From contig CBFFRP010000108.1 in assembly GCA_965644295.1 (NCBI GenBank), positions 248,001 through 312,000 of the forward strand: 64,000 bases of DNA. Reading direction: 5' to 3'. The notes beneath the pieces are model-generated. The model did no database searches. It was given only the letters and a program-made list of their open reading frames with translations, and was not told where the DNA came from. Both the position numbers and the translations under genes were made by a program. Origin of the DNA: Paraphysomonas bandaiensis. Taxonomy: Eukaryota > Protista > Chrysophyceae. Positions 500 through 58,747 of the stretch are shown here, one piece after another; position 1 is the stretch's first letter; every line of letters begins with the position of its first letter.

Positions 500-970
500 T
501 ATATACATATGATTCCCAGGCCAGAGGAAGGCCTCCAGGAATGACCTTCATCCATATACATCACTAATAACTCAGCCTGATCACAACTGATTCATCATCA
601 ATGCATAAGGGAAGATACATTCAGTATTCTCATTGTAGTTGAAGCCTTGTATACGTACTTCCAAGTACAGTTCAATAAACAATAAGTACCTAATGAAATA
701 CATAAGTACAACTGTATTACTGGATAATCTGGCAATACACGTCTATCAGCATGGATATCAAACCCGGAATTCTCCAGTAAACTTCTCCAGCCTTAAGCAT
801 TAATATATATATATAATAAGAACATATACATATAAATCATCAATCATAATATCTTCATCATTGAACTTCATTATTGGTAATCCTGTCTTTCTTTGTCTTT
901 TGAATAGATATATAAGTATCAATGATAAGCATAAATTGTCATATTCATAATATATCATATAGCTTAATGT
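500..970 (-). repeat. Degenerate dispersed repeat, homologous to about 55200-55450
   Basis: The reverse complement of 700-800 (aaggctggagaagtttactggagaattccgggtttgatatccatgctgatagacgtgtattgccagattatccagtaatacagttgtactt) aligns without gaps to about 55347-55437 (aaggcttgagaattttactcgtgaattcctggttttatatccaggctaatagaggggtattgccgaattctccagtaatgcagttgtactt). Weaker similarity extends on both sides, so the boundaries are approximate. Confidence 0.65.
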
Positions 971-2786
971 GAGATACGGTAATAATAATAATATTCAATC
1001 TATGTTTGCACAGATAGTATGTACAAAGTTAAGCATATACAATAGAGAGCTCATGTAGCATAAAATAACCAGATATGGCTGGTTATTACATTTTGCTGTA
1101 GTTAAAACGATATTTTTCTTTGTCTTTTAAATATGTTGGTTATAAATAGCTATATGATTTAGTTAATATACGCTAGTCTTTTCTAGAGTTGTACAGATAC
1201 TATGTACAATTATATTCTGGAATAGTGATACTATTATTTATGAACCCAAAGGACATGGATTGAGATTTTTTTGCATTCCTATTACAAACTGAAAATAAAA
1301 TTAATCTTAATAAGAAAAGTGTAATCGTATGATTACACACTTACTGGAGAATTACAGGTAATATATTCAAGCTAGTAAATGTGTATTTTCAAATTAAACT
1401 GTTGTGCGCTACGTGCTTCTGGTATAGTCTTCAAATAATAAATAATTTGACCTCATCTATATATGTTTAGGACACTATACATCAACGTCAATAAGCGTAC
1501 TACATGTATAAATATACTTAATGTAACATCTCTAATAAACTGAGTATTAATATAACGATTAGCCTCAAATGTAGTTTGTTATAAATTACTAACGAATACC
1601 ACTACTTAAAGCCAGGGATCGTAGATATCATTATAGCGCACTGAAAATACAAAGCGGGTTATGATATTCAGTAATTTGTTACATTTTTGAAGGAAAAACT
1701 GGTTTATAGATGCTGTAGTTTTTTTTAATGCTGATCGAGGATGAAACGTGAATTGCAAGGACACAACAAAAGCACACTCAATAAATCCTCTGCATGAATG
1801 TCAACCTTTCTTACTCCAATTATTAAAGTAATTCTTCTAAAAACTATTTATTTTATTTAGTAGATCTGAAATTTATTTACACTATTCCAATAAAAAATCA
1901 AGTTTTCCCAGCATTACAATGTAAACTTGTCGCTTGTCGTTCAATTATTCAAACCATGTCTGATTTGTCAGCGTTTCGCCAGTTGTAGACCTTGAATAAA
2001 TCATTACAGCTCTACAGCTCTGGCGTCTCACATTTCAACGATAAGGTTCTCAATATCGCTATAATCGATTCGGAATTTTCAACGGAGTTAACTCTTGTAG
2101 TGGACATATACTTTCATCATTAGCTTTTAATATATCGACTGTGTCCCTTCATAGACAACAGGTATTCAGCTACGCGCTTCTTCCTTGTAGATATCATTCG
2201 TATGTCATTGAGATAATTCTCTCTATCAGAGGCTGCTTTCGTCCACTGGGCAGAGAATGTACAGTCCGGAGTGCAACGATCCTCCATACCTCAAAAAATG
2301 GATATTTTGGGGGTTAGAGTTACTGCTGTGTACATGTATACTGTAGCTTTCTAGCCATCACCTGTCATAAAACTGCAGCTTTTTTATAAAAGTCGAGAAT
2401 GATACCTTGTGTATCTTTTTTATATATCATCCTGGTACAGTTTTCAGTTTGTCTGCTGAAGGTTCCATCCCCACACTTTCTCTACCCCCTGACATAAGGT
2501 AGGGGTCTGTTATACTCCCAGCAGTGCATACATCCGTATGTCGTATGTATGTATGTGTGTATGTATGTATGTATGTAGGTATGATCTTATACACTTGTAT
2601 GGTATACTTCAAACGCTCCAGCCATCCCACACACACACACAACACTGAGCTGTACTCCTCCCACGAATACATCATACATATATATATAAGCCCCCCTCTC
2701 CTCACATACACTGTAGATTGTAGGTTCCATATATTTATTAACTATCAATTAGATTTGGAGGAGTGTCTGGGTACCTCTTTCTGGGC

Positions 2787-4505
2787 ATGAAAGGATTTCT
2801 GAATAAAGTACAGCGGCGTGTGAGTGGATCAGGCCCATCGAGTGGTAGTGAGAGTAAAAATGAGAAGCCCTCAACACCCATAACCACAGGTAAAGCCGGT
2901 GCTCGTACAAATGGAATAGAACCTACACCAAAAGCGGATGTTACATTACCAAGACGTGAAAGAAGGTGAGCAATAGAGGGCTGCTTGTTAATGTATGTGT
3001 GATTGTGTGGATAGACGATCTTCTTTTATGAGAGCACAAAAGATGCAAGTTCTTAAGGATCTGGCACTTCTATCAGATACACCCATGCAGAAAAGAGAAG
3101 TAATAATATTTTATTGTGTGTATTTTGGTAAATTTCCTTCTTAGGCATTGTTTAAGCAAAAGCTGCAACTCTGCGGTGTTATCTTTAATTTCGATGATGC
3201 TGAGTCTGACATGCGCGGAAAAGAACTGAAAAGAGAAACCTTATTAGAACTGGCTGAATATGTGAATTCTCCTGTGGGACAAAAAATATTTACAGAGTCG
3301 CTAATGCCAGATGTGGTGGAGATGGTGCGTGTGAATCTCTTTCGTACACTTCCCCCACAGACAGATGACTTTGACCCCGAAGAAGACGAGCCATCTATGG
3401 AGGCTGCATGGCCACATCTACAGGTGCATATTATTATTTTATCATTGGATTAGTAGTGTTGTGTTTTTTCTAGTCTGAGGGATTGTGTTGTACATATAGG
3501 TTGTGTACGAATTCTTCCTCCGGTTTGTGGTAAGTTCAGAGGTTAATGGAAAAGTTGCAAAGCGGTATGTGGATCAGGCATTTATCCGGAACTGGATCGA
3601 GTTGTTTGATGCTGAAGACCCTAGAGAGAGAGATTATGTGAAGACTATTCTACATCGTATGTATGGAAAGTTTATGTCCTATCGTTCATTCATCAGGAAG
3701 ACTATCTCACAAGTGTTTTACCGATACATATACGAGACTGGGAAACACAACGGCATTGGAGAACTATTGGAGATCCTTGGCTCGATAATCAATGGTTTTG
3801 CCATTCCTCTAAAGGTGGAACACTTGCAGTTCCTTGAAAAGGCGCTCATTCCATTACACAAACCCCGTGCCCTGTCAGTGTACCACCCACAGCTCTCGTA
3901 CTGTATATCACAATACGTAGAGAAGGACGCGGAGACTGTCGGTGTCATTGTCACAGGACTGATTAGGTTTTGGCCTTGGAGTTGCTCAAGTAAACAGGTG
4001 CTGCTGCTTAATGAGCTCGAAGAGATCATGGAACTGTGCCGCGGGGAGCAGTTGAACCAGGTTCAGGATCAAATATTTAAACTCCTTGCCACCTGCCTTG
4101 CTAGTGAGCACTTCCAGGTGGTCGAACGAGCCTTATACTTCTGGAACTCAGAGCATCTGTGCGCCAATATACTCGCCCAGAACAAAGCACACATATTCCT
4201 TCCCTACATATTTGGACCGCTCAGTAAAAATGCACAGGGTCATTGGAACCAAACTGTTGAGAGTCTTGCACAGAGTGTTCTGAAGATGTATGTACCATGC
4301 ATACTATCTATAAATTTGATGGTTTGTGTTGAACTCTTTTCTTCACAGGTATATGGAGCTTGATATCAACCTCTACGACCGGTGTGCTCGGGAGAACAAT
4401 GATAAGGAGCGCATAAAGGAATCTCAGCTTGCAGCTTCTAAAAGTAAATGGCAATCCATCATTGAAGCTGCCGCAGAGAAGGGTGTTAAGCCTGACCCCA
4501 ACTAG
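2787..4505 (+). CDS. PPP2R5: Protein phosphatase 2A regulatory subunit B' (B56 family), 5 exons: 2787-2965, 3015-3099, 3145-3423, 3500-4287, 4349-4505
   Basis: B56 motifs VNLFRTLPP, EAAWPHLQVVYEFFLRF, EDPRERDYVKTILHRMYGKF, HNGIGELLEILGSIINGFAIPLK, HFQVVERAL and HWN are present. Four GT-AG introns join the ORF fragments in frame, ending at TAG 4503-4505. Confidence 0.96.
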
Positions 4506-6149: not shown

Positions 6150-6253
6150 ATTCTGCCCACTCAAAGCCAAATCCTTTTGTGCAATAAAAGGGGCACTAAG
6201 TAGTGTCACTTGTGTAGTAGACGTCTTTGGGCTTGACGAATAAACCGGCATCC
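6150..6253 (+). repeat. Internal fragment of the ribozyme-headed non-autonomous element
   Basis: ttctgcccactca...gtgtcacttgtgtag...acgtctttggg..tgacgaataaac.ggcatc matches about 56365-56462. Confidence 0.8.
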
Positions 6254-6463: not shown

Positions 6464-6848
6464 TATTGAATGTCTTTTTATTTAGCAATAGGCGTTAAAA
6501 ACTCGTTCCGATATAGTGGCTAGTTGAATACTAGATCTACTAGTTAGACCTCTACCCATAACTAATCAGCACAAATTCTATTATCCTACTATTTAACGCT
6601 ACAGAAGCTGCTTGTGCGTCGCCGCAAGCACCAAGGTGCAACCACTTCCGTTCTTGATGTTGTGTGTGAGTTCGCCTTGCTCGTGTGTCTGAGGACTCAC
6701 TGGCGCGTGTTGTCCGGGGGTCTCCCCTTGGGATAAGGTTCCGCCTGGCTCTGAGGTACCGGGTTCTGTATTAAGGTCCTGAGTGTACCGAGCACTAGAT
6801 GTGTGTACTGAGATGTTGATAGTGTGGTGGAATGTGGCGGTGTCACCA
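6464..6848 (-). mobile_element. 5'-truncated LINE (subfamily A) copy: ORF end plus 3' UTR
   Basis: The reverse complement matches about 9170-9549, encoding PKGRPPD and carrying the same 3' UTR. It is flanked by an 11/12-matching TSD: TTGCGATAAACA (6452-6463) and TTGCGATATACA (6849-6860). Confidence 0.9.
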
Positions 6849-6914
6849 TTGCGATATACACCTACACTAGCATTCTCATGCTACATGCCGAAAAGAAAGG
6901 ACTGACTAACATTT

Positions 6915-9317
6915 GGCTACATCATTCTCTACGACTGGTCGTGGCGTCCACACCCAGTCCCTATCCAAACATCACTAGAGTCGATACATTACCTCGGAGC
7001 AGACCTTCCTCTCACAATCACAGACAAGGCCTCCCATGATTGGTGTCTAAAATACCTGAAAGTCGTGACCACACACCTAGGGATTAAACAGGCCTCAGCC
7101 GGCTGTAAAGTCATGGTTATCGAGACCCAAATCATACCGACTTTGCTCTATAGAGCCACCAAAGCTTCATGGCCGCTACACTGGTACAGAGAAATTGACG
7201 CTGCTTGCGCAACCCTCTACAGAAAGGCCCTCAGTCTAGGCCCTGGATACCCCACGGAACTGATCTACCTCTCACTCAAGCACAACGGATTAGGTATGAA
7301 ACGTTTCTCAGACTCGGCGCAGGAGCAAAAATGGGGATCTCTACAGCGCGCAATAACCCTCGGGGGAGAAGCAGGTCAAGCAGCACATTTTCTACTCACT
7401 CAGACAACAGAGCCACAGCCCCAATACCACCACTATGTTCTCAGCCTCAGGGAATGGGGAACGGAATTGGGCCTTACCCTTCAGCAACCTGAGCCCCCCG
7501 AACCACAGGATGAACACATGCTGACCAATCTAAAACAAGAACTCGGCCTTAATAGCGTCCAACCAGATACTTTCAAGGCAATCTTCACAGATGGATCATA
7601 CACAGCCAGTGCGCTCTCCACGCGTCGCCTCACTCATGTCAATCCGCGAACACGATGGACACACCGAGGAGGTGCAGCGGTCGTCTACTTACCCCCAGAA
7701 AATGCCTGGGAAGATGGTACAACCATAATACTACGACTAGATACACCCTTTCGTGATGTGCCAGGTTTGGACTCATACGCATATGAACTCATAGGCACAG
7801 CCATGGGGCTTATACTCTCAACACGCATTCCCGAACACATAAAAAGCCACACAGACTGTCAGGCAGTGTGCACCCGTACTGAGGAAGCACTCTCCACAAG
7901 ACGCAGAGCTCTCGGTCACCGTGCAAAAGGGGTACTACTCGAAAGCATCGCGGCCAGTAGAGATTGCAAACGACAGGTGACCTGGGTGAGGTCCCATCCC
8001 GAACGACGTACCACAGATGAAACGGAGTGGACGTTTGAGGACAAGGGCATCTATATTGCGGACGCAGTCGCGGGTGAAGACTGGCATGAAGTCGATCGCA
8101 TCCTTGGAAAAAATAACTACACTGTCTGTACAATTGCGATTGACAGTGCCATTGAACGCTTACTAACCGCTGGATTATGGCACTGGCGTTTGCACAGTAC
8201 AAGACGGCCATACTACTCTAGCCCACTCCTTACTGATTTCCAAGATCTCTGCGACCTAAGGACACTTGAGAACTACACTTCAACCAGAGATCAACGCTAC
8301 GGAAACAATCCTGATCGAGCGCCTGGCTACTGGACCAATAGCGGAGTACACCTCCCGCGCAAACTAGCTCAAGCGGATGGCAGTGCATCCAAAGACAAAC
8401 TCAGCTCAAATCTACGCCAAAGAATTCTCAACACGGCACTGACATGGGACAAATCTTTCTGCATAGGGAGGAACCGGGCCAAAACCAAACAGGGGCTTGA
8501 CCTGACCAAAGCCGCATGCTCTGACTGCGGGTTTCGACTAGATTCCCTAAAACATATGTGCCTCGACTGCACACATGAATCCATCACCCAAATAAGGGAA
8601 ACTGCATTTCAATCGCATAAAAATGTGCTACACGAAATACAGAGAACTCAGACCTTACCCAACTGGATCACATCTGCACTACGGAGACTCTCCAGCAGAG
8701 CCTGGAATCCCTCCATCCCACAGGTCGAGAGATACTGGACTGGAACCATCACAGCAGCCCAACTGGAAACGGTCTTCGGAGATGACATACACAACCACCT
8801 GACGGCTCACAGTCTACGGAACCTAGAAACAGTGGTTATTAATCTCCTGCAACCGCTTTACACTGCAGCGAAGCTTATGTTACAGGATCGCGGTTGTCGC
8901 TATATCACCATGTCCAAAAGGCCGCCCAGGCTACTCCCGAGACCCCGTCCGAAACGCAGTCAGTCAAGACAACGTCCGAGAGTCCTTCGACTACTAGGGG
9001 TCCAACGAAGACCCCCCACAGCGTATCCGACTCCAGACACACGTGCACACCTCACAGGTCCTACCCGACAGAGCACTGGACTGCCCAGACCTCCACAACG
9101 CCGACGGCTTCGACAACTCTATCTACACCCGCGGCCCCACAGGAGCACAGTAACACATACTACAAACCCAACTCCTCCTCCCAACAATCCCCACCACTCC
9201 CAACCCACACATCTGGAACTAGGTGCACTCAGGACCCTAATTCAGAATGCTGAGCCCCCTCCAAAACCAATGGAGACCCATCCCAAAGGGAGACCCCCAG
9301 ATCAAAAGCGCCGGTGA
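6915..9317 (+). CDS. LINE ORF, 5'-partial: end of reverse transcriptase, RNase H and C-x2-C-x8-H-x4-C zinc knuckle
   Basis: IHYLGA (late RT motif, in frame upstream of the 7065 ORF call) and ELIYLSLKHNGLGM (thumb). RNase H motifs IFTDGS, YELIG, HTDCQAV, WVRSH and IADAVA, then CSDCGFRLDSLKHMCLDC. No internal stops. Confidence 0.9.
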   Translation, partial: GYIILYDWSWRPHPVPIQTSLESIHYLGADLPLTITDKASHDWCLKYLKVVTTHLGIKQASAGCKVMVIETQIIPTLLYRATKASWPLHWYREIDAACATLYRKALSLGPGYPTELIYLSLKHNGLGMKRFSDSAQEQKWGSLQRAITLGGEAGQAAHFLLTQTTEPQPQYHHYVLSLREWGTELGLTLQQPEPPEPQDEHMLTNLKQELGLNSVQPDTFKAIFTDGSYTASALSTRRLTHVNPRTRWTHRGGAAVVYLPPENAWEDGTTIILRLDTPFRDVPGLDSYAYELIGTAMGLILSTRIPEHIKSHTDCQAVCTRTEEALSTRRRALGHRAKGVLLESIAASRDCKRQVTWVRSHPERRTTDETEWTFEDKGIYIADAVAGEDWHEVDRILGKNNYTVCTIAIDSAIERLLTAGLWHWRLHSTRRPYYSSPLLTDFQDLCDLRTLENYTSTRDQRYGNNPDRAPGYWTNSGVHLPRKLAQADGSASKDKLSSNLRQRILNTALTWDKSFCIGRNRAKTKQGLDLTKAACSDCGFRLDSLKHMCLDCTHESITQIRETAFQSHKNVLHEIQRTQTLPNWITSALRRLSSRAWNPSIPQVERYWTGTITAAQLETVFGDDIHNHLTAHSLRNLETVVINLLQPLYTAAKLMLQDRGCRYITMSKRPPRLLPRPRPKRSQSRQRPRVLRLLGVQRRPPTAYPTPDTRAHLTGPTRQSTGLPRPPQRRRLRQLYLHPRPHRSTVTHTTNPTPPPNNPHHSQPTHLELGALRTLIQNAEPPPKPMETHPKGRPPDQKRR

Positions 9318-9549
9318 GTCCACGGACACACGATAAAGGCGAATTTCATATCACACAAAAAGAACGGAAGTGGTTGCACCTTGGTGCTTGCGGCGACGCA
9401 CAAGCAGCTTTCGTAGCGTTAAATAGTAGGATAAAAGAGTTTGTATTGATTAGTTACGGGTAGTGGTCTAACTAGTATGACTAGCATTCTTCTAGCCACT
9501 AATTGATGCAAGGTCTCAACGCCTATTGCTAAATAATCAGACATTCACT
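6915..9549 (+). mobile_element. 5'-truncated non-LTR retrotransposon (LINE subfamily A) with RT C-terminus, RNase H and CCHC zinc finger
   Basis: Perfect 10-bp TSD ACTAACATTT at 6905-6914 and 9550-9559. The reading frame is open from the 5' junction to 9317. The 3' UTR is shared with several other loci in the window. Confidence 0.93.
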
Positions 9550-9966
9550 ACTAACATTTTTATAAACTTTATGCAAAAAACTTTCTTAAAAGATTGTTTG
9601 AGTTTTATGTTTTATATATTGTGTTACTATATATTGTATATACATGAAATACCTTTCAACACCAACTTAACCAACTAGCACGATGCCAGAATAATACATA
9701 AAACTACTATTTACTATTGAATATTGAAGCTAATTCAAATTCTTTTCCAGTCATATATATAGCTTCTCTTCTAGATTTCATTCTATGATTACAACATACA
9801 TTTGCCATGCACATATTTCTAAATAGGTATGCAGCAAGGTAGAACAGCTTGTGGTTAATTTTGTAGGAAATGGTCGTTTAAGCATATAGTAAAACACATC
9901 AGATTGAAATTTAGGAGACAGGAATTGATTAATTATAGTGGCGTCAGCGTGGCTTGCAAAACAGAT

Positions 9967-23670: not shown

Positions 23671-25968
23671 TTACATCATGTCACTGTTCTCGCTATCCTG
23701 TGCAGCGACTCTGTTCTCTTCCAACAGGCCGTTGCCTTCAACATCACCCTTAGCGTAGTCCTTGTAGGTAATGTCACCCTTCCAGTACTTCTCGTAACAG
23801 TACCAGGTGATGATGAGACCAATGATAACAGGGATGAAGCCATAGTAAAAGTGGTCCCAGTCATCATTACCAGCGATAAGAGGAGCTACAGTGAGAGAGA
23901 TAATGCTCATGAGTTTAATAAGGATGTTAAGAGCAGGGCCGGAAGTGTCTTTGAAAGGGTCACCGACAGTGTCACCGACAACACAGGCCTTGTGGGTATC
24001 TGTGCCCTTGCCACCGCACGCCTTCTCAATCTCAATGTACTTCTTGGAGTTGTCCCAAGCGCCACCGGCAGTGCTCATCATGATGGCAAGCATAGCACCA
24101 GAGGCGATAGATCCACCTAGAAGACCAGCGAGGCAGCGAGGGCCAACGAGAAAGCCAATAAAGAGAGGGGAAAGGATGGCATAAGCTCCAGGAAGGACCA
24201 TCTCCTGAACAGAGGACACAGTGCAGATCTCCACACAGCGCTCGGAATCAGGCTCAGCGGTGCCCTCCATCAAACCGGGAATAGTGTGGAACTGACGGCG
24301 GACCTCTTCGATGATGGCAGCAGCGGCCTTCCTGACGGAAAGCATGGTCAAAGCGGCAAACAGGTAGGGAAGCATAGCACCAAAGAGCATGCCAGAGAAC
24401 ACAATAGGGTCGCCCATGTTGATTTGGCCCTCAATATCAGCCTGTTTCTCGAAAGCAGAGAGAAGAGAAACAGCAGTGAGGACAGCAGAACCAATAGCAA
24501 ATCCTTTGCCAGTAGCAGCAGTAGTGTTTCCTAGAGCATCCAAAGCGTCAGTGGTGTCACGTACACGCTCATCGAGTTCAGCCATTTCAGCAATGCCACC
24601 AGCATTATCAGCAACAGGTCCGTAGGCATCAGTGGCAAGGGTGACAGCAAGAGTGGAGAGCATACCAACGGCGGCAATAGCAATACCGTACTCGCCAGCA
24701 AGAGCATTACAGCAAATGACAGTAAAGACAATCACAAAGATAGGACCAACGCAAGAGATCATGCCAACACCAAGACCCTGGATGATAACAGTGGCGGGAC
24801 CAGTGAGACCAGCATCGGTGATAGACTTAACTGGCTTGTAAGAGTAAGAGGTGAAGTACTCAGTCAACTCGCCAATAAGAACACCACAGAAAAGACCGAG
24901 GATGATGCATCCAAAGCATCTCCATCCATCAGATTGACGTCCAGGGAACAGACCCCAGCAGATAAAGATGGAGAAAACGATCACAAGGAATGAAGCGGAG
25001 TGGACAGCTTTGTGAAGAGCGTGAAGGAGGTCCTTCTGGGAAGCATCGTCCTTGGTAGACACAAACCAGTATCCAATCCAAGAGGAAAGCACGCCAGCAC
25101 CAGCCAACCAGAATGGAAGAGCCATAAGAGCAACGTCACCCTCAGCAAGAGTCACAGTCGCAATGATAGATCCAACAAAGGATTCGAAAAGGTCAGCACC
25201 CATACCAGCAACATCACCAACGTTGTCTCCGACATTATCGGCGATGACAGCGGGGTTACGGGGGTCATCCTCAGGAATGCCCTGTTCAACTTTACCAACA
25301 AGATCGGCACCAACATCGGCAGCCTTGGTGTAGATGCCACCAGTGACACGGGCAAAGAGAGCAATAGAAGAGGCACCAAATCCGAATCCAGCGAGAGACT
25401 CAGCCGCCCATTGGTATTTGACAGCTCTGTCGGGATAAGAGGCGGCGTCTTCGGAACTGATATCATCAGAATCCCGTCCGTAGCTCATGAGGATGAGGAA
25501 GATAGACACACCGAAGAGACCGAGGCCAACAACACAGAATCCCATGACGGCACCTCCAGAGAATGCAACACGGAGGGCAGCATTGAGTCCCAGCTTATCA
25601 GCAGCATGGGTTGTACGAGTATTTGCGTCGGTTGCGACAACCATACCGACCCAACCAGCAGTAGCAGACAAGAGGGCGCCAGCAATGAAGCACCCAGCAA
25701 CTCTGATACCGTCGGTGTCATCAGTGCGAGTGGAAGAAACAGAAAACATCAAGAGGAGGATAGCAGCAACACACAAAACAAAACCAGTGAGGTACTTGTA
25801 TTCGGTAATAAGAAAAGAGCGAGATCCAGCAGCAATAGAGTCAGAAAGCTTCTGCATTTTCTCACTGCCTCTATCGTATCCCTTAAGCTTCTGTGTAAGG
25901 TACACACACATTACGATAGAGATGGCGGCACCAACGAGAGAAAGAGCGACAATCTCGTCGACTCCCAT
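23671..25968 (-). CDS. Membrane-bound cation-translocating pyrophosphatase, K+-dependent type
   Basis: 765 aa with many TM helices. Motifs [84 protein letters not shown] and [18 protein letters not shown] probable 5' UTR intron lies at about 25974-26037. Confidence 0.98.
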
Positions 25969-31326: not shown

Positions 31327-31415
31327 CCCTCAACATAGTCGGACTCGCACCTTTTCAAGGTGTTCTGGGGGGATAAGAAGTACCGCAGACGCTTCTTCGG
31401 GAAACTATCGTGAGT
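31327..31415 (+). ncRNA. HDV-like (Pr77-type) ribozyme fold, copy 2
   Basis: P2 ACTCGC/GTGAGT; P3 ACC/GGT with 7-nt loop TTTTCAA; P1' GTTCTGGG; AGTA-P4(CCGCAGA/TCTTCGG)-GAA; J4/2 ACTAT. Confidence 0.55.
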
Positions 31416-31873
31416 TGCATAATAATATAAAAACTTAAATTGACATTTTCAAATTTTCACCAGGTTTTGACCGTTTCACCAGCAGAAGGTTTGGTTATCA
31501 AATCGACTAATATGTAGGACATGGTACTAGTAGAGGAACACTTCTATAAAAGTAGCACTTGTGTAGACGTCTTAAGGCCCTGACGAATACACAGGCACCC
31601 GGGAATGGGCCCACCTCAATGGTTAGCGGGGTTTTGGGTTTTGTTGCCTGCTGAAGTTAAGTATCCGGGAAGTTCACCTTCTTAAGGACTCAACAACCCT
31701 GAAGTCAATTGATGTCAGGTATATCAGCATTCTGCTTTCTCACTGCATTTGCTTTAATTGAGTGATTGATGTCGAGTTCGAGTTCACATTATTCGGCATC
31801 TGTGTGGCCAGTGACCGAGGTAATGCTGCGTCGAATTTTCCTCATGGATGCATGGCAATAATGGCAATGTGAT

Positions 31874-32078
31874 TAGATATACATAAAGATCTGATTATTA
31901 CATGAGAGAACTACTGCATAATTACTTTAGACTAGTAGTAGTAGCACCGATTACTAAATACTCAGTTGTCTCAGGTCTGCTTGTGCATTGCTGCAAGCAC
32001 CTTGGTGCAACCATCCCTTGTATTGGATTTAGTCCGGTGGTCTTCCTTTGGGTAATGTTTCTGGCTGTCCGGAGCCAC
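31874..32078 (-). mobile_element. LINE subfamily B 3'-end fragment nested in the non-autonomous element
   Basis: The reverse complement matches 30971-31180. It is flanked by ATGTGAT at 31867-31873 and 32079-32085, a TSD that overlaps a 5'-junction microhomology. Confidence 0.88.
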
Positions 32079-33734
32079 ATGTGATGTCTTACCACATGTC
32101 TACTGCCTAGTCTTGGTTCCTACGGGCCCAGGTCATTAAGATTCCAAGAAGGCTCTGGCACTGTTCTCCAAGTCAGATACAATTGTCGTAATTATTTTAT
32201 GTTATTTTTAGTAGGCTTTCATCCATGCGGGGAAGTTCACGGTTCCCTACTAGCGTAAGTCACTCGGGAGTAGAGTGCAAAAGGTGGATGCATGTGCGGG
32301 ATGAGTGCACACAATGGAGGGAAGTCATTGGAGTCAGCTTGAATTTGTAACAGATTTTGGTAGACATCTGTTTCATGCTTCAATAAAAAATATTGAACCA
32401 GTGAGACCGTTTTGTGAACGTGGGAGGACCCGGCGCTAGAGCTACTCTATACCTGTTGCTGTGAACACCTCCTTGTAAGGCTTTAAAGATCAGCCGCATA
32501 TAAAAGAGACACATGTCGAAGACGCCGACCACAAGTTGTTTGTGTTAGGACAACAAGTAGATTGGACAGGAGCATATGATCCGGCTCAAACACACAACTC
32601 TCGTCATATGCCCTTATAGCTAACTAAATTGCGTTGTATAGTTGAGCACTTGTCGGTGCAATAGTAACTAAATGAGAGTAACATAACTTACGTTATGCTT
32701 AGTGTCGCGCAAGTTGTTAGGTTGGTTGCGGCAGCGCACAAGCTTGCGCTTTTTAATAATTACATATTCAATACAGATACTGATATACTGATTATAATGT
32801 TTACTAAAAATGATTATTATCCTAGTGTCAAACACTGATATCATTTTCTTCTATATCAATATCTCGAGACTGACTTCACTGGTGTTACGATGTTGAGTTC
32901 AAGGAACCCTCTACAATAGACAATAGACCATTTGGCAATAAGAAAACTATATAATAATATGAGTCTTTTATAACAATATCGTTTTTCTTTCTGCTAAAAC
33001 ATCTAATAGATATCCTGTTTTGCTCAGGATATCTTTGGGTATACTTTTAAATACAAATATTTTAAGTATAGAAATACTCTGTATAATATATAATACCCAT
33101 AAAATTTTACCTTTCTGTCAAGTTTAAGCACATCTCTTATGTATAATGTAACACATGGGTTATGTATTTCATTTTATTTCGCACGATTACAGAGGTATAA
33201 ACATATTTTATTTTTTCTTCATCATCTTGTGCATGTTACTGTCAGCATTTTGCATTATCACGATACCACTTTTCTCTAATTCTATACCTGTTTGCACTAT
33301 GGAGTGCAGGGCAGGTGTTTAATTAATAGCATCATTGCAGGGCTAGAGCACACTTTGACTTGATCTTTAAAAGGACTTATATTTTTAAACACCAAATACG
33401 ATCCAGAAATCGTGAATAATAACCACGATAGAGATATCTTCATAACACAGCATCATATATGCAGTCACGAAGAATGAATTATACTGCTAATATACTGGTA
33501 GTGATATCCTTCTCACAAAGCCAACATAAATACCATTGTCTTCTTCATTGGTCAATGAACGCAATGCACGATCAACTCAGAGACCAATTCTAATTTAAGC
33601 ACTACACACTCAAACAATCACTATAAATACCTCTACGGACACCCTTCAGTGAAAGCGTCGACACTGGTAAATATATGCCCCTTTGCCTCAATGATACGCA
33701 ATACATACCTCACCCCAAAATCATTTCCATTCCG

Positions 33735-34430
33735 TTATTTTATATCTTCTTGAGGAAGATTCTTGAAGTAAACTTTTGCGCTACCAGTAGAGGTTTCACG
33801 GTAGCCCTGCGACTCATACCATCGTTGAGCATATACATTAGCCGTCTTCAGAGCACAAATTCTAATACCCTGTTCCTGAGCCCACCCCTCGGCTGCTCGC
33901 ATCAAAGCCTGTCCAACTCCTCGTTTTCTCCACAACGGCGCGACACTTACCCTCCATACTGTGCAAATGATGTCGTCGGTCAATCCGATACCCGAAAGAG
34001 CACTTGAAAATGATGAGGCTGAATCTTTCTGTATAGCTACAATACCCACGATAGTATCCGGATATTCCATATGAGGCGGACACTCCGCTCTTGGTGCAAC
34101 AGCTACAAAAAAGGCACTTTCTCCTTCTTTACACCAGCTTCTGCGTATGTCCCTCATGTCCCCCCATATGATATAGACGACTGCCACTATACCCATAAGG
34201 CACCCCATACAGCACCTAGATAAACACCCCTCTGCACTGATAACTGTTTGCCAGAAGCCGAATAACCATAGTTTAAATATCTTCCATTCATCAGAGTAGA
34301 AACACTGAGAGTGTGATTAGCCGCATGACACACACGTATGACCGTTACGGCGATATGTTACCTGTGTAGACGACCTCTCGGCTGGGATACTGCTCAGTTC
34401 CAGCACTGTAATTGCCTTGGAGCTAGACAT
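33735..34430 (-). CDS. GNAT-family N-acetyltransferase (NAT8/camello-like, with hydrophobic segment), 2 exons
   Basis: Motif A RVSVAPLWRKRGVGQALM and motif B TANVYAQRWYESQGY. The first exon MSSSKAITV...STQ splices in frame. Confidence 0.85.
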
Positions 34431-34925: not shown

Positions 34926-37625
34926 ATGCAAACCTCTGCACTGCATATGATTCGACACACCTCATGCTATATATGCATATATCTTCTCTCTTGTACCATT
35001 TTCATATCTGGCGATACGACTCCTCCGCCTCGCTTTAATCTTGCAGCGCAGGTGCCGTTACTTGTGGAGGATGGTGAACCAGTCACTTCAAGTCTTACCA
35101 TTCAGCAGGCAATACTTATGGCTGTAAATGAAATCAATAATAAGACGGATGGTGTTGCTGATGATTTACTTCCTCAGACTCATTTGTATATCACCATACG
35201 TTCAGTTGGTGCTTCATTTGAGGATGGTGTCAGTGCGACAGTTGAGCAAGTGTCGGCTTTTGGAGAAAATGAGACAGTTGTAGCATGCATCGGTCCATCT
35301 AATTTCGAGACATACAAAGGTGGGTCCTCGATTTTTTTGAACCATCACGTAGCCCAAGTTGGCTACCATGCTAGAGACTCAGCAGTAGGGATGTCGGATC
35401 TATATCCCAATTCTCTCCGCACTGTACCAGGACATTACGTCGCAGGATACATTATAGCGGACTTTGTTTCCCATCAACGCTGGAAACGAGTTTCACTCTT
35501 TTCTACTTCAGATACATTTGGCAATATAGCGTCCTTCTTTTTTGCGAAGGAAGCAAGAAAGCATGGTGTGACCATCTTAACACAGCACAAAATATCGAAG
35601 TACACGAAAGACTACTCCTCTCATATTCTCCGTGCGAAACGGTCGGGGGCAAAAATTTTTGTTCTATTAATGTCATCTGAATCCGCTGCAAAGTTGTTAA
35701 GTCAGGCTTATTTACTGGGGCTCTTTAATTCGGACACCGTAATCATTGGCAATGAAGAAATATCGAGTTTAACAACATGGGCACGACTTAATCCTGAGTT
35801 ACCATCTCTTGTGACGGGGTTTATTAGTTTTAAATACCATGAACATCCAGAACTGAGTAAAGAAAAGACTGAATTTATTCAGCGCTTTCGCAGTCAGTCA
35901 CACACACTAGGTAGAACTGAGAATAGTTCAGAAGTGTGCGACAACTCAACGGATGCCACAGGCAATTATTTATACCGCGTTGATTACTATGAGGATCATG
36001 GAAGTGTCAGTACCTGCGTTGGCTTAAATCATTCCTTATTTGTAGAGGATGGAAGTGATCTACATCCTGCAGTATATCACGCTTATGATGCTACCTACGC
36101 CATCGCAAATGGCCTGCATCGTTTGGTGTATGAAAAGGGGAATTACTTGGTAAATGATGACGGTCTTACTGAGGAGCTTCTATATGGAGTACATTTCCCA
36201 GGTGTTTCTGGTGAGGTAACGTTCTCCACACAATATGAAGAAGCTGGCCTTGACGTGGGGGGGCGGAGTACTGGGTTCACTTTTGATATTCTCAATTATG
36301 ACAGCTCGTTTTCCTCAGCTGAATTTGTTTTAATTGGCAAATATCACAGTGAAACTGGGGTCACTTTCTGTGAAAATTGTCGAATAACATATGCTGGCAG
36401 CGAAAAGAAACCTTTGGATAGAGCTGAGGCGAAAGTTGTGCATCTGAACTCTTTCAAGTTTGCTGTCGCGATGGCTTTCTCGCTTATGGCTGTATTATTC
36501 GTCATATTTTACTTGCTCATATTTGTTGTGTACAAAGAGACTCGCTTAATAAAAGCAGCACAACCATTGGTATGTTACACTATCCTGTTTGGGTGTTGTT
36601 TAGGTTGTATTCGATCAATCGCGGCAACTGTAAATCCGACAGTGGGTCTTTGTATATTGCAATTGTGGCTGTCACACATGTCATTCGCTATTGTATTTTC
36701 TGGTATGCTTGTGAAGCTCTGGAAAGTGCACAAGGTTATGTACTCGTCATTTAAACGGATAAAGCTGTCACGCATTGCTACTGTGCGGTTAATTCTCCTA
36801 TGCACGCTCCCTGTGTGCATTTATCTGTTTTTCATTTCTTTACTCGGCGGAGTAGAAGTTATCGATGTTTTGGTTCGGGAGAATCAGCATAGTATTGTGT
36901 ATCAACAGCAATGTGAATTTGAATTACGCACTGAATTGTACGGGCTGTATGCTATCGAACTGATGTCCGTGTTGTGTGGTTTATATCTTTGCTACCTCGT
37001 TAAAGATATCCCTGAAAGCTTATCGCATTATATTGCTCTGAGCAAAAGTAAGTTTTTTCATTGAAAACTTTATGTATGTCATACATTTAATGCAGGTATC
37101 ACATGCGTTACGTTTTTGTCTTCAGTGTGTTTCTTCGTAATATACTCGTTTCAGCTCGACCCGAATAGCGCCCAATGCTTGGTATCTGTTGCATTTTCTT
37201 TATGTATTATTACCATACTTGATTATTTATTCCGAAGTACTTGTGTCAATTTGCTCTTGGGGAAGGACATTTCAAATTCCTTCCTAGTTAAAAAAGGAAT
37301 GCATAAAAGTGTTTTGGAAGTTTGGAATGGGGTACCTATTAGCCCAGAAGAAGATGAGAACTATTGTGCATCTCCCAGTACGAATATCGTGAATAACTGG
37401 AATTTGAAAACGATTCCAAGGGATGTTGTTGAAGTAGCAGAGAGGAAAAAGGAAATCCATAATGTTATGGATGCATTGCGACAAGAGTTATCTCAATTGG
37501 TCGCCTCAGAAATATACTCTGATTCAGACTATGTTTCAGATATGTCTGTACTATCTCAGGCTCCGCGTTCTCGGAATAGTAGTCCAACAGTTTCGGTACC
37601 TTCGTATGTTCAACGTTTTTCCTGA
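34926..37625 (+). CDS. Class C GPCR (GABA-B-like): Venus-flytrap domain plus 7TM, one intron at about 37048-37095
   Basis: Signal peptide, AVNEIN, YPNSLRTVP, WKRVSLF, HAYDATYAIA and FPGVSGEVTF, followed by 7TM motifs IKAAQPLVCYTILFG, MLVKLWKVHKV and VKDIPE. Confidence 0.9.
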
Positions 37626-38529: not shown

Positions 38530-38994
38530 GAATGTCTCATTATTAGCAATTGGCGTTTAAGATTCAGTGCTTAGCTCTGATATCCTACTATTTAACGCTA
38601 CGAAAGCTGCTTGTGCGTCACCGCAAGCACCAAGGTGCAAGGTGCAACCACTTTCACTCTATTACTCAAGAAAGACGCAGTGAGTAACAGAGTGTTGATA
38701 TATCTGACATCTGCTGACTTCAGGACTTTTGAGTCCTTAAGGTGAACAGCCCGGAGGATGCCTTACTTCAGCAGGCAGCCTAATACCCCGTTGTTACCCT
38801 TGAGATGGCCCATTCCCAAATTCCTGTTTATTTGTCAAAGCCCAAAGACGTCTACACAAGCATTCGACTAAGAGTGGACAAAACGTTATCTGCTGTCTAT
38901 ATGTTTGAATCTAACGTTAGTTTCGCGGAGAAATATCTCCGCTATTTATCCCCCAGAACACCACGAAAAGTGCTAGTCCGACTTTGTTGCGGGG
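38530..38994 (-). mobile_element. Non-autonomous element: HDV-like head fused to LINE-A 3' tail
   Basis: The reverse complement starts CCCCGCAACAAAGTCGGACTAGCAC, continues through the shared body, then joins aagtggttgcaccttg...tgcttgcggtgacgcacaagcagctttcgtagcgttaaatagtagga and ends aataatgagacattc. Confidence 0.88.
38911..38994 (-). ncRNA. HDV-like (Pr77-type) ribozyme fold, copy 3
   Basis: P1 CCCCGCAAC/GTTCTGGGG; P2 CTAGC/GTTAG, compensatory relative to the other copies; P4 GCGGAGA/TCTCCGC; GAAACTAA. P3/L3 is one nucleotide short. Confidence 0.6.
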
Positions 38995-39391: not shown

Positions 39392-39950
39392 TCTATCAAC
39401 AAAGTGTCGGATTTGCACATTATCGTGATGTACTGGGAAATAAATACTGGATAGATTTTATCTGAGAAAAAGTAACATGAGGCCAACTTTCAAACAGAAG
39501 ATTATGTTCTGCTTGTTTGGTACAAGTTACACCTTTCTCTTGTATAAAAACACGCCTTGACGAATAAATAGACACTCGGGGTTTTCAGGCTGCCTGCTGA
39601 AGTTTTACACGCCCGAAACAAGCAAATCTTATGGACTCAAAAAATCCTGAAGTCAGCAGATGTCAGGCAGATATATATCAACATTCTGCTGGCTCACTGC
39701 ATCTGTTCTGAGTGTTTAGTGCCGAATATGAGGTCACATGATTGGTGCAGCCAATAGCAGAGGTAGCGCGATAGGCGTACCTCATGGATGCATCATGACA
39801 ATAGAAATGTCTTACCACACATACTTACTCCCCAGTCTTACTTACCTGACTCAGGTCATATAGATTAGACCTGACAATATATTATTCTAGCAGTGTTTAG
39901 TGCATTTGTGATGATTTTAAGTTTTTTCTTTCGTACAGCAGCGGAGAAGG
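39392..39950 (+). mobile_element. Older, diverged copy of the ribozyme-headed element; boundaries approximate
   Basis: Degenerate head caacaaagtgtcggatttgcacattatcgtgatgtactggg, then ttgacgaataaa, ggctgcctgctgaag, ggactcaaaaaatcctgaagtcagcagatgtcag, cctcatggatgcat and gtcttaccac, collinear with the 31327 copy. Confidence 0.8.
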
Positions 39951-55450: not shown

Positions 55451-56254
55451 TTGTCCTGAAGAGATTGTATTTGAAGTATACTATGTCAAGTCTTTGGATG
55501 AGGACAGTGATGATGACTCTTCTTTATCCGCAATGAAATAATCTTCGCATATTTGTAGTATTGATTCCCATTCAGGAGTACGACCTCCAAAGCAGAGAGC
55601 TAAATCCAAACGGAAGGTTCATTCAGCACGGAAAGTTGTCTATGTTGTCCACACGGTGACTCCATGAGATGAGTCTGCTGATAAACTTTCCATGTAGCAT
55701 GTTTCGTATCTTAATAAAGTTGAACAAGGACAGTGAGTTCAAAGAGAAGGCTGGCACCAGGTCGGCCATGGTTAAATGGAGTCATTAATTGACAAGGATT
55801 GTGCTCAACCTTAGGAGAGAACTCATTCCCAAGAGAGCGATATTATATTCGTGGAATCGGCTCGTATATATATTGGTACAATGGAGAGGGCAGTTAAGTT
55901 TATATAGTTCGAGCTCGGCGTGTCTTACCGGTTACAGTATTGCCTGAAGAGGCATCACTATTAAGTGATGATTGGAAACTGGTTCAACTGCAAGCATGGG
56001 TTCCAATCATCCCACAGTGTTCGATGTATGTAATCTTTGGGGGTCATCCATTACGGGAAATAAAGATGGTTGACCTCTTTGAACATAAGCTATTGCTAAA
56101 AATAAGTCTTTCACACATTATAATAATCACCATAGTCAGTTTTACTTCTAACTATTCCGTTGTGTGTGATAGTTATGTTCTGAATTTTATTCACTTTTCT
56201 ACATTACTGTGCTCAACACTTTGCATTCTAATAATCACAACATTCTTCTGTGCT

Positions 56255-56340
56255 CCCTCAACAAAGTCGGACTCGCACCTTTTCGTGGCGTTCTGGGGGA
56301 TAAGTACCGGAGAGATTCTCTCTGGGAAACTAACGTGAAC
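56255..56340 (+). ncRNA. HDV-like (Pr77-type) ribozyme fold, copy 1
   Basis: CCCTCAAC (P1), TCGC (P2), ACC-TTTTCGT-GGC (P3/L3), GTTCTGGG (P1'), AGTA-CCGGAGAG/CTCTCTGG-GAA (P4), ACTAA (J4/2, candidate catalytic C56330), GTGA (P2'). It begins exactly at the TSD-defined 5' end. Confidence 0.62.
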
Positions 56341-56739
56341 CGCAAACATAGTCAGCAGATATTCTTCTGCCCACTCATAGCCGAATGCATGCGTGGTACA
56401 AGGGACACCAATAAGTGTCACTTGTGTAGACGTCTTTGGGCCCTGACGAATAAACAGGCATCTGGGACAGGGCCCACCTAAAGGGGAACCGGGGTATTGG
56501 GCTGCCTGCTGAAGTCAAGCATCCGGGATGTTCACCTTAAGAACTCAGAGCGGAAGTGGTCACACCTTGGTGCTTGCGGCGACGCACAAGCAGCTTCCGT
56601 GGCGTTAAATAGTTAAATAGTGTGTAATGATTCGTTACAGGTAGAGGTCTAACTAGTTTGTCTAGCATTCGTCTAGCTACAAAGTTGGTACTGGTTTTTA
56701 ACGCCTATTGCTCTCTATAAGACTTTTAATATACTACTA
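56255..56739 (+). mobile_element. Complete 485-bp non-autonomous non-LTR retroelement (HDV-like head plus LINE-A 3' tail)
   Basis: TSD CTGTGCT at 56248-56254 and 56740-56746. Starts CCCTCAAC; from about 56550 it matches the LINE 3' UTR (9364-9549); ends in a (TAC)n tail. Confidence 0.92.
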
Positions 56740-57179
56740 CTGTGCTTAAATATGCATTCCACAAGCCCAGGTAAGTGACTCTAGTACGCATTGTAGATAT
56801 TTTAACATGCTGCTGCATACTATATATCAGGGCCTAGTAGCCATTAATGGTAATACCATTTCCATTTTAATTGCCGGGACATTATTCACAGGGCTGCGTA
56901 TCAATTAATTGACGCAGGTTGTAGTCAATTATAATTGCAATTATTACTTGCTGCCTCAATATCTACAGTACTTGCATTATCTACAGTAAGTTCTCAAGGG
57001 TATACAAGTAAAATACCTTTACAGGTATACCACCACATTCTTTCATTGATATATCGTTAGTTTAAAAAATGAAATCAAGTGTGACTACTGTACTAAAAAA
57101 TTATTTAAATTATTTTAATAAAGACGCATCAGATGTATATTTGCTGGGAAAATAAAATTAGGGATATACCTGTGGTGGC

Positions 57180-58747
57180 TTAGGTCAATTGTGACAGCAG
57201 ATTTGCTTTACTTTCTTGCATTCTCTTAAGAGCAATTGATTCTGATTCAACTTTTTCGACACTAGCTAAATCTATCAGTACTGGTTTCATACCAATGACA
57301 TCATCTCCACTGTCGTCCAGGACTGGAAGCAATGCAACATGTCTCCACTCAAGATCGCCATGCACAAGACAGTGCCGAGCGAGTTCTTCGACACTATCAT
57401 TGAGCACACTCTCCGCTGCAATATCTGAGGACAAAATAAAGTCGTTTATTTTTGTCGTCCACGCTTCAAACCGTTCGTCACTAGGCGACTCACTGTTCGC
57501 AACTCTACCCCAATTTGATAGATCAAAATCAAAGCAAACTGACCCCTCTCGTTTTATGCAATGGAATACAAACGGCATGACGAGACAATGTGAATCAGCA
57601 ACACAGTACTGAACACACCTACTCCGTACACTTCTCTCCATACATTCAATTCCTTTTCACAAAGCTTCTCATAATAAAATTTCTTTACAACAACTAAATT
57701 GAAATCTTTAGTCAGTGCGAGACAAACCTGACCATCCGCCCCTCCGTGAAATTGCCGCAACACTATTACATGATTTGGTTCATAGTTGGGTAGTGCAAGT
57801 GTAATCGCCGTGTGTCCCATTAAGTCAGTGTTGGAAATCGTGCCCCAACGCCAATTCTTTTCAGAGAGAATGGTGTAAGCCCTTTGTGAGGTTAGCAGCG
57901 ATACCACTCGATATTGAGATTGCATCGATTTCAACAATACTGTTCCAATCAAGGGAAGTACTTGAGAATCATCCCAAGAGTACACCTCGCTCCCATGGAG
58001 GTGTCTTTCCAGTGTGCTCGCCACGGGAAACTGGGTGTACAAGTCTTCATACATGGGTGGATTCAAGTCTTTGGAAGCAGCAAAGTCGTCTGTGTCCGGA
58101 AACCAGACTACTCGCCATGCATCCAGTGTAGTTAAAATCCCGAACATTTCACATTGCCCAAAAGAGTTACGTAAATTGGACATATAATCGAATATTTGTC
58201 CTAGCACTTTATCATCGGACAGCTTTGATTTCTCCGGTTGTTTCACCTCAATCACTGTAATCGGTACACCAGATTTGGTCTTAACAACCCAAATATCAGA
58301 TTTCGACTCTCTCCTACTCGTTTCTACCATACACACTAATGTTGCTTGATAATGAATCGATAATTCCATATTAACACCCAAGAAATACATTACATCTCGA
58401 ACAATTCTTCGGACATAATCCTCAATTTCTGCCTCATTAAAGTATGATATGCGTGTTTTACAATCCTGGTTTCGAAGTGCCAGGAGGTATTCACTTGCCA
58501 TGGACAAATTGTGCGCTTCAATATTATCAAAGATACCAACGTCCTGAACATCAAACATATTGACAGCCGTATGTGTAGACGTATAAGTAGAAGCCGAAGC
58601 GCTTCTTCTACTTAATTCCATGCCACCTAATCCACTTTTCCAGAACTGCTCAATGGAATACACAGCCTGCTTAGCCAGGTCCTCAGCCTGCTTGAGAAGT
58701 AGCAGTCGAACAGGTTCCGGAAGTACTTCAAGATCGATTTCTTCCAT
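57180..58747 (-). pseudogene. PD-(D/E)xK nuclease plus atypical kinase fusion (Crinkler-type architecture), with one frameshift near 57600
   Basis: ORF 57554-58747 has SDIWVV...VIEVKQP...GQIFDYM...GILTT and the kinase N-lobe HGGADGQV/VVVKK/ELNVW. Overlapping ORF 57180-57641 continues CLVMPF...HGDLEWRHV...VLIDLA in another frame. Confidence 0.75.

Follow-up and report, generated by a model that had tools for sequence, protein, structure and literature searches.

The 485-bp element at positions 56255-56739 of the window, a 64,000-nt stretch of the genome of the chrysophyte Paraphysomonas bandaiensis, belongs to what we take, with a probability of roughly 0.6, to be a SINE-like, LINE-dependent family assembled from two borrowed modules: an active HDV-like ribozyme as its head and the 3′ UTR of a LINE as its tail. 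Under this proposal, read-through from a neighbouring promoter would yield an RNA that includes the element, and this RNA would adopt the double-pseudoknot fold and be self-cleaved immediately 5′ of element nt 1, so that no upstream promoter would be needed for new copies to carry an identical first base. The LINE protein would then recognise the 3′ module (nt 293-479) in trans, and target-primed reverse transcription would insert the RNA, making target-site duplications (TSDs) of 7-15 bp. The catalytic activity, the co-transcription and the lineage of the mobilising LINE are the parts of this scheme that we infer.

The structure of the family, its TSDs and its exact 5′ end can be observed directly. 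The window copy lies between perfect 7-bp repeats, and BLAST within the window places the meeting point of the two modules at element nt 293 (Table 1); at the level of the family, the tail module comprises element nt 293-479. A search of the genome (62.6 Mb in 669 contigs) recovered at least 40 full-length copies with 89-93% identity, and first-look counts gave ~3,100 candidates genome-wide for the whole element and ~2,500 for the head alone. Exact TSDs of their own, 7-15 bp long, flank 20 of 30 copies. The first base is constant, with every copy starting at CCCTCAACAAAGTCGG, and the family ends in ...GACTTTCAATATA followed by a few variable bases. The earlier note on this DNA had described a complete non-autonomous retroelement, and the full-length copies, at least 40 in number, bear this out. 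The chance adjacency of head and tail, a doubt that the earlier note had itself raised, is contradicted by the recurrence of head-plus-tail composites throughout the genome: the shared 5′ end, the recurring copies and the individual TSDs together argue that the junction did not arise by accident. The (TAC)n terminus that had been proposed for the element turned out to be private to the window copy and is absent from the family end. Further copies of the head, as had been claimed, are present within the window at 38993-38730 (minus strand), 31327-31413 plus 31550-31692, and 6151-6252, and a degenerate head copy lies at 39393.

Dispersed copies with TSDs of their own and a 3′ end in common with a LINE of the same genome, the marks of a LINE-dependent retroposon, are both present, and we have little doubt that the retroposon family is real and depends on a LINE. 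The window copy is a slightly decayed member of this very abundant, ~480-bp parasitic retroelement. We also examined 24 public runs as assembled contigs, and the runs containing element sequence were marine. Among the contigs of one run of the organism, 108 depart from the element precisely at 56255 and a further 49 at 56254, break points that mark where family contigs diverge and not where an RNA starts. As for the surroundings, an intronless host gene for an H+-pyrophosphatase (Pfam E 3e-255) is found nearby at window positions 23671-25968 on the minus strand, and 34926-37064 on the plus strand encodes a class C GPCR whose ligand-binding domain is of the ANF-receptor type.

Table 1. Coordinates of the element, its predicted parts and related copies in the window (nt, element numbering).
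Feature	Window positions	Strand	Remarks
Left TSD, CTGTGCT	56248-56254	+	Read directly; same 7-mer at 56740-56746
Putative L1Tc/Pr77-type HDV-like ribozyme module, nt 1-88	56255-56342	+	Model R2; consensus passes HDV descriptor
Predicted P1 5′ strand, CCCUCA	56255-56260	+	Pairs with 56294-56299 (UGGGGG)
Predicted P2 5′ strand, nt 14-22, A17 bulged	56268-56276	+	Pairs with 56335-56342 (nt 81-88)
Predicted P3, ACC/GGU, nt 23-25/33-35	56277-56289	+	Encloses 7-nt L3 loop UUUUCGU, nt 26-32
Predicted P4 hairpin, nt 53-71	56307-56325	+	Conserved AGUA before hairpin
Predicted J4/2, GAAACUAAC	56326-56334	+	Candidate catalytic C at 56330 (nt 76)
Remaining head/body, nt 89-292	56343-56546	+	Variable, often deleted middle; nt 201-293 a second conserved block
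LINE-derived tail, nt 293-485	56547-56739	+	82.5% vs LINE-A 3′ UTR, 79.8% vs LINE-B 3′ UTR
Right TSD, CTGTGCT	56740-56746	+	Read directly
5′-truncated giant LINE copy, 2,640 bp	6913-9552	+	3′ UTR 9318-9552; AACATTT flanks
Second, longer family (~1.06 kb), member	31327-32772	+	Ribozyme head in common, body and tail different
Diverged copy, head plus LINE tail	38575-38993	-	74% identity

The head is predicted to cleave directly 5′ of position 56255 (element nt 1), and L1Tc-type ribozymes are reported to cleave 5′ of C1 (PMC4035085). Anchored at nt 1, the family consensus shows the strand order P1-P2-P3-P3′-P1′-P4-P4′-P2′ of a double pseudoknot. Consensus P1 consists of nt 1-6 opposite nt 40-45, plus C8-G36; it is present in both the MFE and the centroid structure given by RNAfold, and, over 38 copies, its pairs are kept in 94% of cases. 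Within the window copy, the C at 56262 may pair with the G at 56290 across the 1x3 internal loop. Of the seven nucleotides of loop L3, the first is U and the fifth and sixth are CG, features that are invariant in eight relatives (below), and the UUUUCGU of L3 and GAAACUAA, which contains the C at nt 76, are nearly invariant in the 38 copies. Likewise, J4/2 supplies the C-N-A-A that the HDV descriptor requires, and GGAA..CUAA is invariant in the eight-sequence alignment of relatives. The P4 hairpin is kept across subfamilies despite a differing apex, with three of its pairs changed on both sides, and the diverged minus-strand copy at 38575-38993 shows compensatory replacements, C-G to G-C in P4 and C-G to A-U in P2. 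For the P1.1 pseudoknot, a single A46-U pair is possible, and L1TcRz has likewise been reported with one P1.1 pair (PMC3185411).

The fold departs from the L1Tc/Pr77-type form at one point. Where a 7-bp P1 abutting P3′ is expected, the head has six contiguous pairs, then a 1x3 loop (A7 opposite U37, U38 and C39) and then C8-G36. A UUC between GGUG and the 3′ strand of P1 is found in every head of the genome and is absent from all eight relatives (8/8), and this insertion together with the displaced seventh P1 pair might impair folding. The window copy itself carries two private changes: a C replaces the family's T at 56289 and breaks A23-U35 in P3, and an A replaces the family's G at 56339 and breaks C18-G85 in P2; nearly all family contigs read T and G at these positions. 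Through these two mutations the window copy fails the HDV descriptor and, since each of them breaks a helix pair, it is probably decayed and inactive. Every helix and core base is intact in 11 of the 38 heads inspected, which is an undercount because the register of P4 shifts in two subfamilies. Among diverged copies, nt 1-90 stay 85-90% identical where the middle of the element drops to 62-84% identity or is deleted, which marks nt 1-90 as a conserved module. The block at nt 201-293 (56455-56547) shows 82-89% identity in diverged copies and is kept where the middle is deleted.

We then turn to the question of whether this fold could have arisen by chance, and whether it has relatives elsewhere. 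Applied at nt 1, the HDV descriptor, some of whose ranges (P1 of 6 bp, linker of up to 4 nt) were chosen after the sequence had been seen, accepts the consensus and the positive control Pr77 and 6 of 20,000 dinucleotide shuffles; run from each of ~128,000 real starts along the window, it accepts 57. A core pattern scan of a metagenome collection returned nine contigs with seven distinct sequences, and these relatives, which also have the CACC-UNNNCGU-GGUG block, fold as textbook HDV-like examples in which P1 (CCCCAGC/GCUGGGG, CCCCAUC/GAUGGGG, CCCUCCC/GGGAGGG) and P2 (GGCAUU/AAUGCC versus GGCAAU/AUUGCC) covary. In an alignment of these seven sequences with Pr77, whose oligonucleotide sequence is printed in PMC1874656, P1 is 100% paired, with a covariation score that was reached by none of 500 shuffles. 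The same eight sequences make up the covariance model R2, which contains no sequence of this genome. The best R2 hit of the whole window (both strands, filters off) is 56255-56342, with 21.5 bits and an E value of 0.0037, and the alignment runs from end to end with model position 1 on element nt 1; intact copies score 29-31 bits (E ~1e-4 in 208 kb), always from nt 1. At the scale of the whole genome, where such scores are not significant, R2 returned nothing at E ≤0.001.

Other comparisons gave weaker signals. The head was not among the hits of the model built from Pr77 only (R1), global and local alignments of Pr77 with the head gave z values of 1.0-2.8 against shuffles, which are unconvincing alone, and when three mismatches or fewer are allowed in the 15-mer block of Pr77, roughly one chance match turns up per window. 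Within the family there is little covariation, with 93% of cells paired and five double-sided changes against 1.0 expected (reached by 0 of 500 shuffles), and this test has low power because most differences between copies are neutral decay. As a separate observation among the metagenome relatives, an L1Tc-type ribozyme at L055:4730-4813 (the same sequence as in L060) sits 78 nt downstream of a 1,248-aa ORF that matches the Ulp1 (C48) protease; it does not head an RT gene. From the topology and core sequence of the L1Tc/Pr77 type, which give in silico support to the HDV-like head proposed in the earlier note, we consider it likely that the head is related to the L1Tc-type HDV-like ribozyme, and we lean slightly towards a head that is catalytically active and sets the 5′ end of the element.

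A very different origin would make the element an ordinary pol III SINE, whose head came from an unrecognised small RNA gene and whose HDV-like fold is a product of chance. The head-body-LINE tail build and the copy number are indeed typical of SINEs, and the RNAfold energy of the head equals that of shuffles (z 0.0), though P1, P3 and P4 appear in the centroid structure. However, an Rfam scan of 55800-57200 at E values of up to 10 gave noise, without a ribozyme, tRNA, 5S, 7SL or snRNA match, and ARAGORN found no tRNA, in agreement with the previous claim that the head is not of the tRNA type. Moreover, a chance fold at a fixed position is expected at a rate of ~3-5 in 10,000, and the independent model R2 matches exactly at nt 1. 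We therefore regard this origin as very improbable.

The conservation of the head could also reflect promoter use, since the CGTG at +30 to +33 of the element, which is invariant in all relatives, is also the sequence of the essential DPE motif that Pr77 carries at +25 to +28 (PMC4748587). In this case, the 5′ module would mainly be an internal RNA polymerase II promoter, the 5′ end of the element would be a transcription start and the fold would be a vestige or have a secondary role. In Trypanosoma cruzi, Pr77 serves as promoter and as ribozyme, and contigs from poly-A marine metatranscriptomes include SINE-family sequence, where DNA carry-over is possible. Against a role in promoting transcription alone, P1 covaries in the eight relatives, and P4 and, once, P2 covary among the subfamilies of this genome; such covariation points to selection on RNA structure and not on DNA motifs alone. 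While we consider it unlikely that the module is mainly a promoter, the roles of promoter and ribozyme are not mutually exclusive.

The homology of the tail with LINE 3′ UTRs is again a direct observation, and it extends to the very 3′ end. Element nt 293-458 match window positions 9361-9530 at 82.5% identity (BLAST), a region that sits just downstream of a 750-codon ORF terminating at 9317, and the derivation of the tail from a LINE, as previously claimed, is thus confirmed by its match to the 3′ UTR of the LINE copy at 6913-9552. This copy corresponds, with 99.9% identity, to nt 6717-9356 of LINE-A, a full-length copy of 9,356 bp, which is located on genome contig C440 (L043:474-9521, minus strand) and encodes a single ORF of ~3,016 aa. 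According to Pfam, the ORF contains SET, APE and RT domains, with SET preceding APE and RT, and ~1,080 aa of its N-terminal sequence have no Pfam match; OTU domains were likewise not detected by Pfam. An RNase H-like region was seen in the ORF by a feature search only, and Pfam and PDB sequence searches detected no RNase H in the C-terminus. Dozens of copies in the genome are 98-100% identical to the C-terminal protein, with open frames of up to 3,021 codons, and this near-identity suggests that the giant LINE is young and probably still active. A second lineage, LINE-B, is 71% identical to LINE-A, and the SINE end ...GACTTTCAATATA is closer to the ...GACATTCAATATA of LINE-B than to the ...GACATTCACTACT of LINE-A.

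Two repeat structures were noted along the way in these LINEs. The 5′ coding region of LINE-A (C440 12533-12634) holds a 42-nt tandem repeat, visible as overlapping 60-nt self-matches offset by 42 nt. The LINE-B copy on contig C143 is bracketed by identical 880-bp direct repeats (23925-24804 and 33411-34290), which are composed of other short repeats; a duplication, either tandem or segmental, might explain them, as might an artefact of assembly.

In pairs of the RIME/NARTc type, the LINE and its short derivative share a 5′ hallmark. The earlier note had proposed such a pair, and on that reading the element would have arisen from a LINE by internal deletion and would share the 5′ hallmark as well as the 3′ end of its partner. 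The element and the LINE do have a tail in common, and the ribozyme type is the one that heads L1Tc, ingi and their derivatives. Also, metagenome contig L061 (PDWI01058735.1) carries a compact L1Tc-type ribozyme (3021-3091, minus strand) directly ahead of an APE-RT ORF (702-3095, minus strand), so that this LINE starts with such a ribozyme; the closest relatives of the ORF are at most 29% identical and bear no trypanosomatid label, and we conclude that ribozyme-headed LINEs of this type exist in environmental eukaryotes. The LINEs of this genome, however, begin otherwise. When a full-length LINE was recovered, as the earlier note had suggested, the 9,356-bp LINE-A did not start with the head: seven independent full-length copies start (A)ATTCTCTGCCCTACGATGG / AATTCTCTGCCC... 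between unrelated flanks. The LINE-A′ and LINE-B lineages start AAGRAGCTC..., and in an indirect flank check the 1 kb upstream of one LINE-B copy was absent beside the other six. Neither BLAST nor R2 found the head in these three LINE 5′ variants, which is a direct observation, and no stronger, high-scoring canonical ribozyme appeared among 150 genome candidates scored with R2, a weak negative. In these variants the autonomous partner thus lacks the 5′ head, the proposed pair is not supported in its defining feature, and we find a deletion origin highly doubtful. Because the three 5′ variants of the partner LINE are without the head, the element is, as far as its sequence can tell, a chimeric SINE-like composite and not an internally deleted LINE.

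The two-module composition is also apparent from a second, longer family that has the same head. Many contigs change to the sequence of this family exactly at 56547. It is ~1,057 nt long (reference copy L011:2087-3143, minus strand, with a 13-bp TSD) and contains an internal duplication, and its tail ends ...CTGACATTCAAT; this end, ...AATAATCTGACATTCAAT, looks like that of a third related LINE. One head is therefore found on at least two different tails. It is tempting to speculate, as a tentative and rather doubtful extension of the chimeric reading, that the Pr77/L1Tc-type ribozyme, which may double as a promoter, is not confined to trypanosomatids and is an old and widespread retroelement head, which in this chrysophyte has become a free-standing module on unrelated giant-LINE tails, giving rise to true SINEs that are defined by a ribozyme. 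If true, such SINEs would do without pol III and without a parent LINE that carries this head.

Most work on short retroelements with a ribozyme head has dealt with trypanosomatids and the rDNA of Drosophila, and the trypanosomatid Pr77 hallmark, which has roles in transcription and mRNA control, is regarded as a signature of that lineage. The literature that we searched, which was not exhaustive, held no description of HDV-like ribozymes in stramenopiles. If the reading of the element as a ribozyme-headed chimera is true, the module would be far more widespread, with thousands of heads in a free-living stramenopile and further ones in environmental contigs, and it would be exchangeable between LINE lineages. 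The 3-nt insertion between P3 and P1 would be a natural variant for probing how much the HDV fold tolerates, and thousands of potential self-cleavage sites could affect host transcripts.

The trypanosomatid elements L1Tc, ingi, NARTc, RIME and SIDER likewise carry an HDV-like ribozyme at their 5′ end (PMC3185411, PMC4035085, PMC1874656). The kinship of our head with the tested ribozyme Pr77, in sequence as well as in fold, is a direct observation: in common with the Pr77 of L1Tc, it has the CCCU start, the CACC-UNNNCGU-GGUG of P3/L3, the AGUA before P4 and the GAARCUAA with the catalytic C, and both the trypanosomatid hallmark and this head have a CGTG near +25 to +33. The short elements are non-coding in both cases, with TSDs of ~12 bp. 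They differ in host, a chrysophyte stramenopile and not a kinetoplastid, and compared with the L1Tc ribozyme, the present head has three extra nucleotides between P3′ and P1′, and its J1/2 and P2 are longer. Unlike in the L1Tc/NARTc pair, the partner LINE here is without the hallmark, and the element ends in a LINE 3′ UTR without poly-A.

Self-cleaving RNA that frees retroelement RNA from co-transcripts is found in the hammerhead SINE Sm-alpha of Schistosoma and in the twister non-LTR elements of S. mansoni, which belong to other ribozyme classes (hammerhead and twister) and to another host lineage (PMC8501958, PMC6765202), and according to a review some metazoan SINEs carry HDV-like or hammerhead ribozymes (PMC6765202). 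Classical LINE-tailed SINEs have the same modular arrangement of head, body and tail, with a tail from the partner LINE, tail swapping and thousands of copies; their heads derive from tRNA, 5S, 7SL or snRNA, whereas the head of the element has no A/B boxes and resembles a ribozyme (PMC4494074). The R2 SIDEs of Drosophila resemble the element in being non-autonomous and in their two ends, a 5′ HDV-like ribozyme that fixes where the RNA begins and a LINE 3′ end for recognition by the reverse transcriptase. They differ in being site-specific to rDNA, low in copy number and derived from known full-length parents, and their ribozyme is of the R2 type, with P1 pairs that start with G in the opposite orientation (PMC3414825). 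In the R2/R1 hybrid SIDEs, head and tail come from different LINEs, as they do here, which makes these hybrids the nearest precedent for the present family (PMC3414825).
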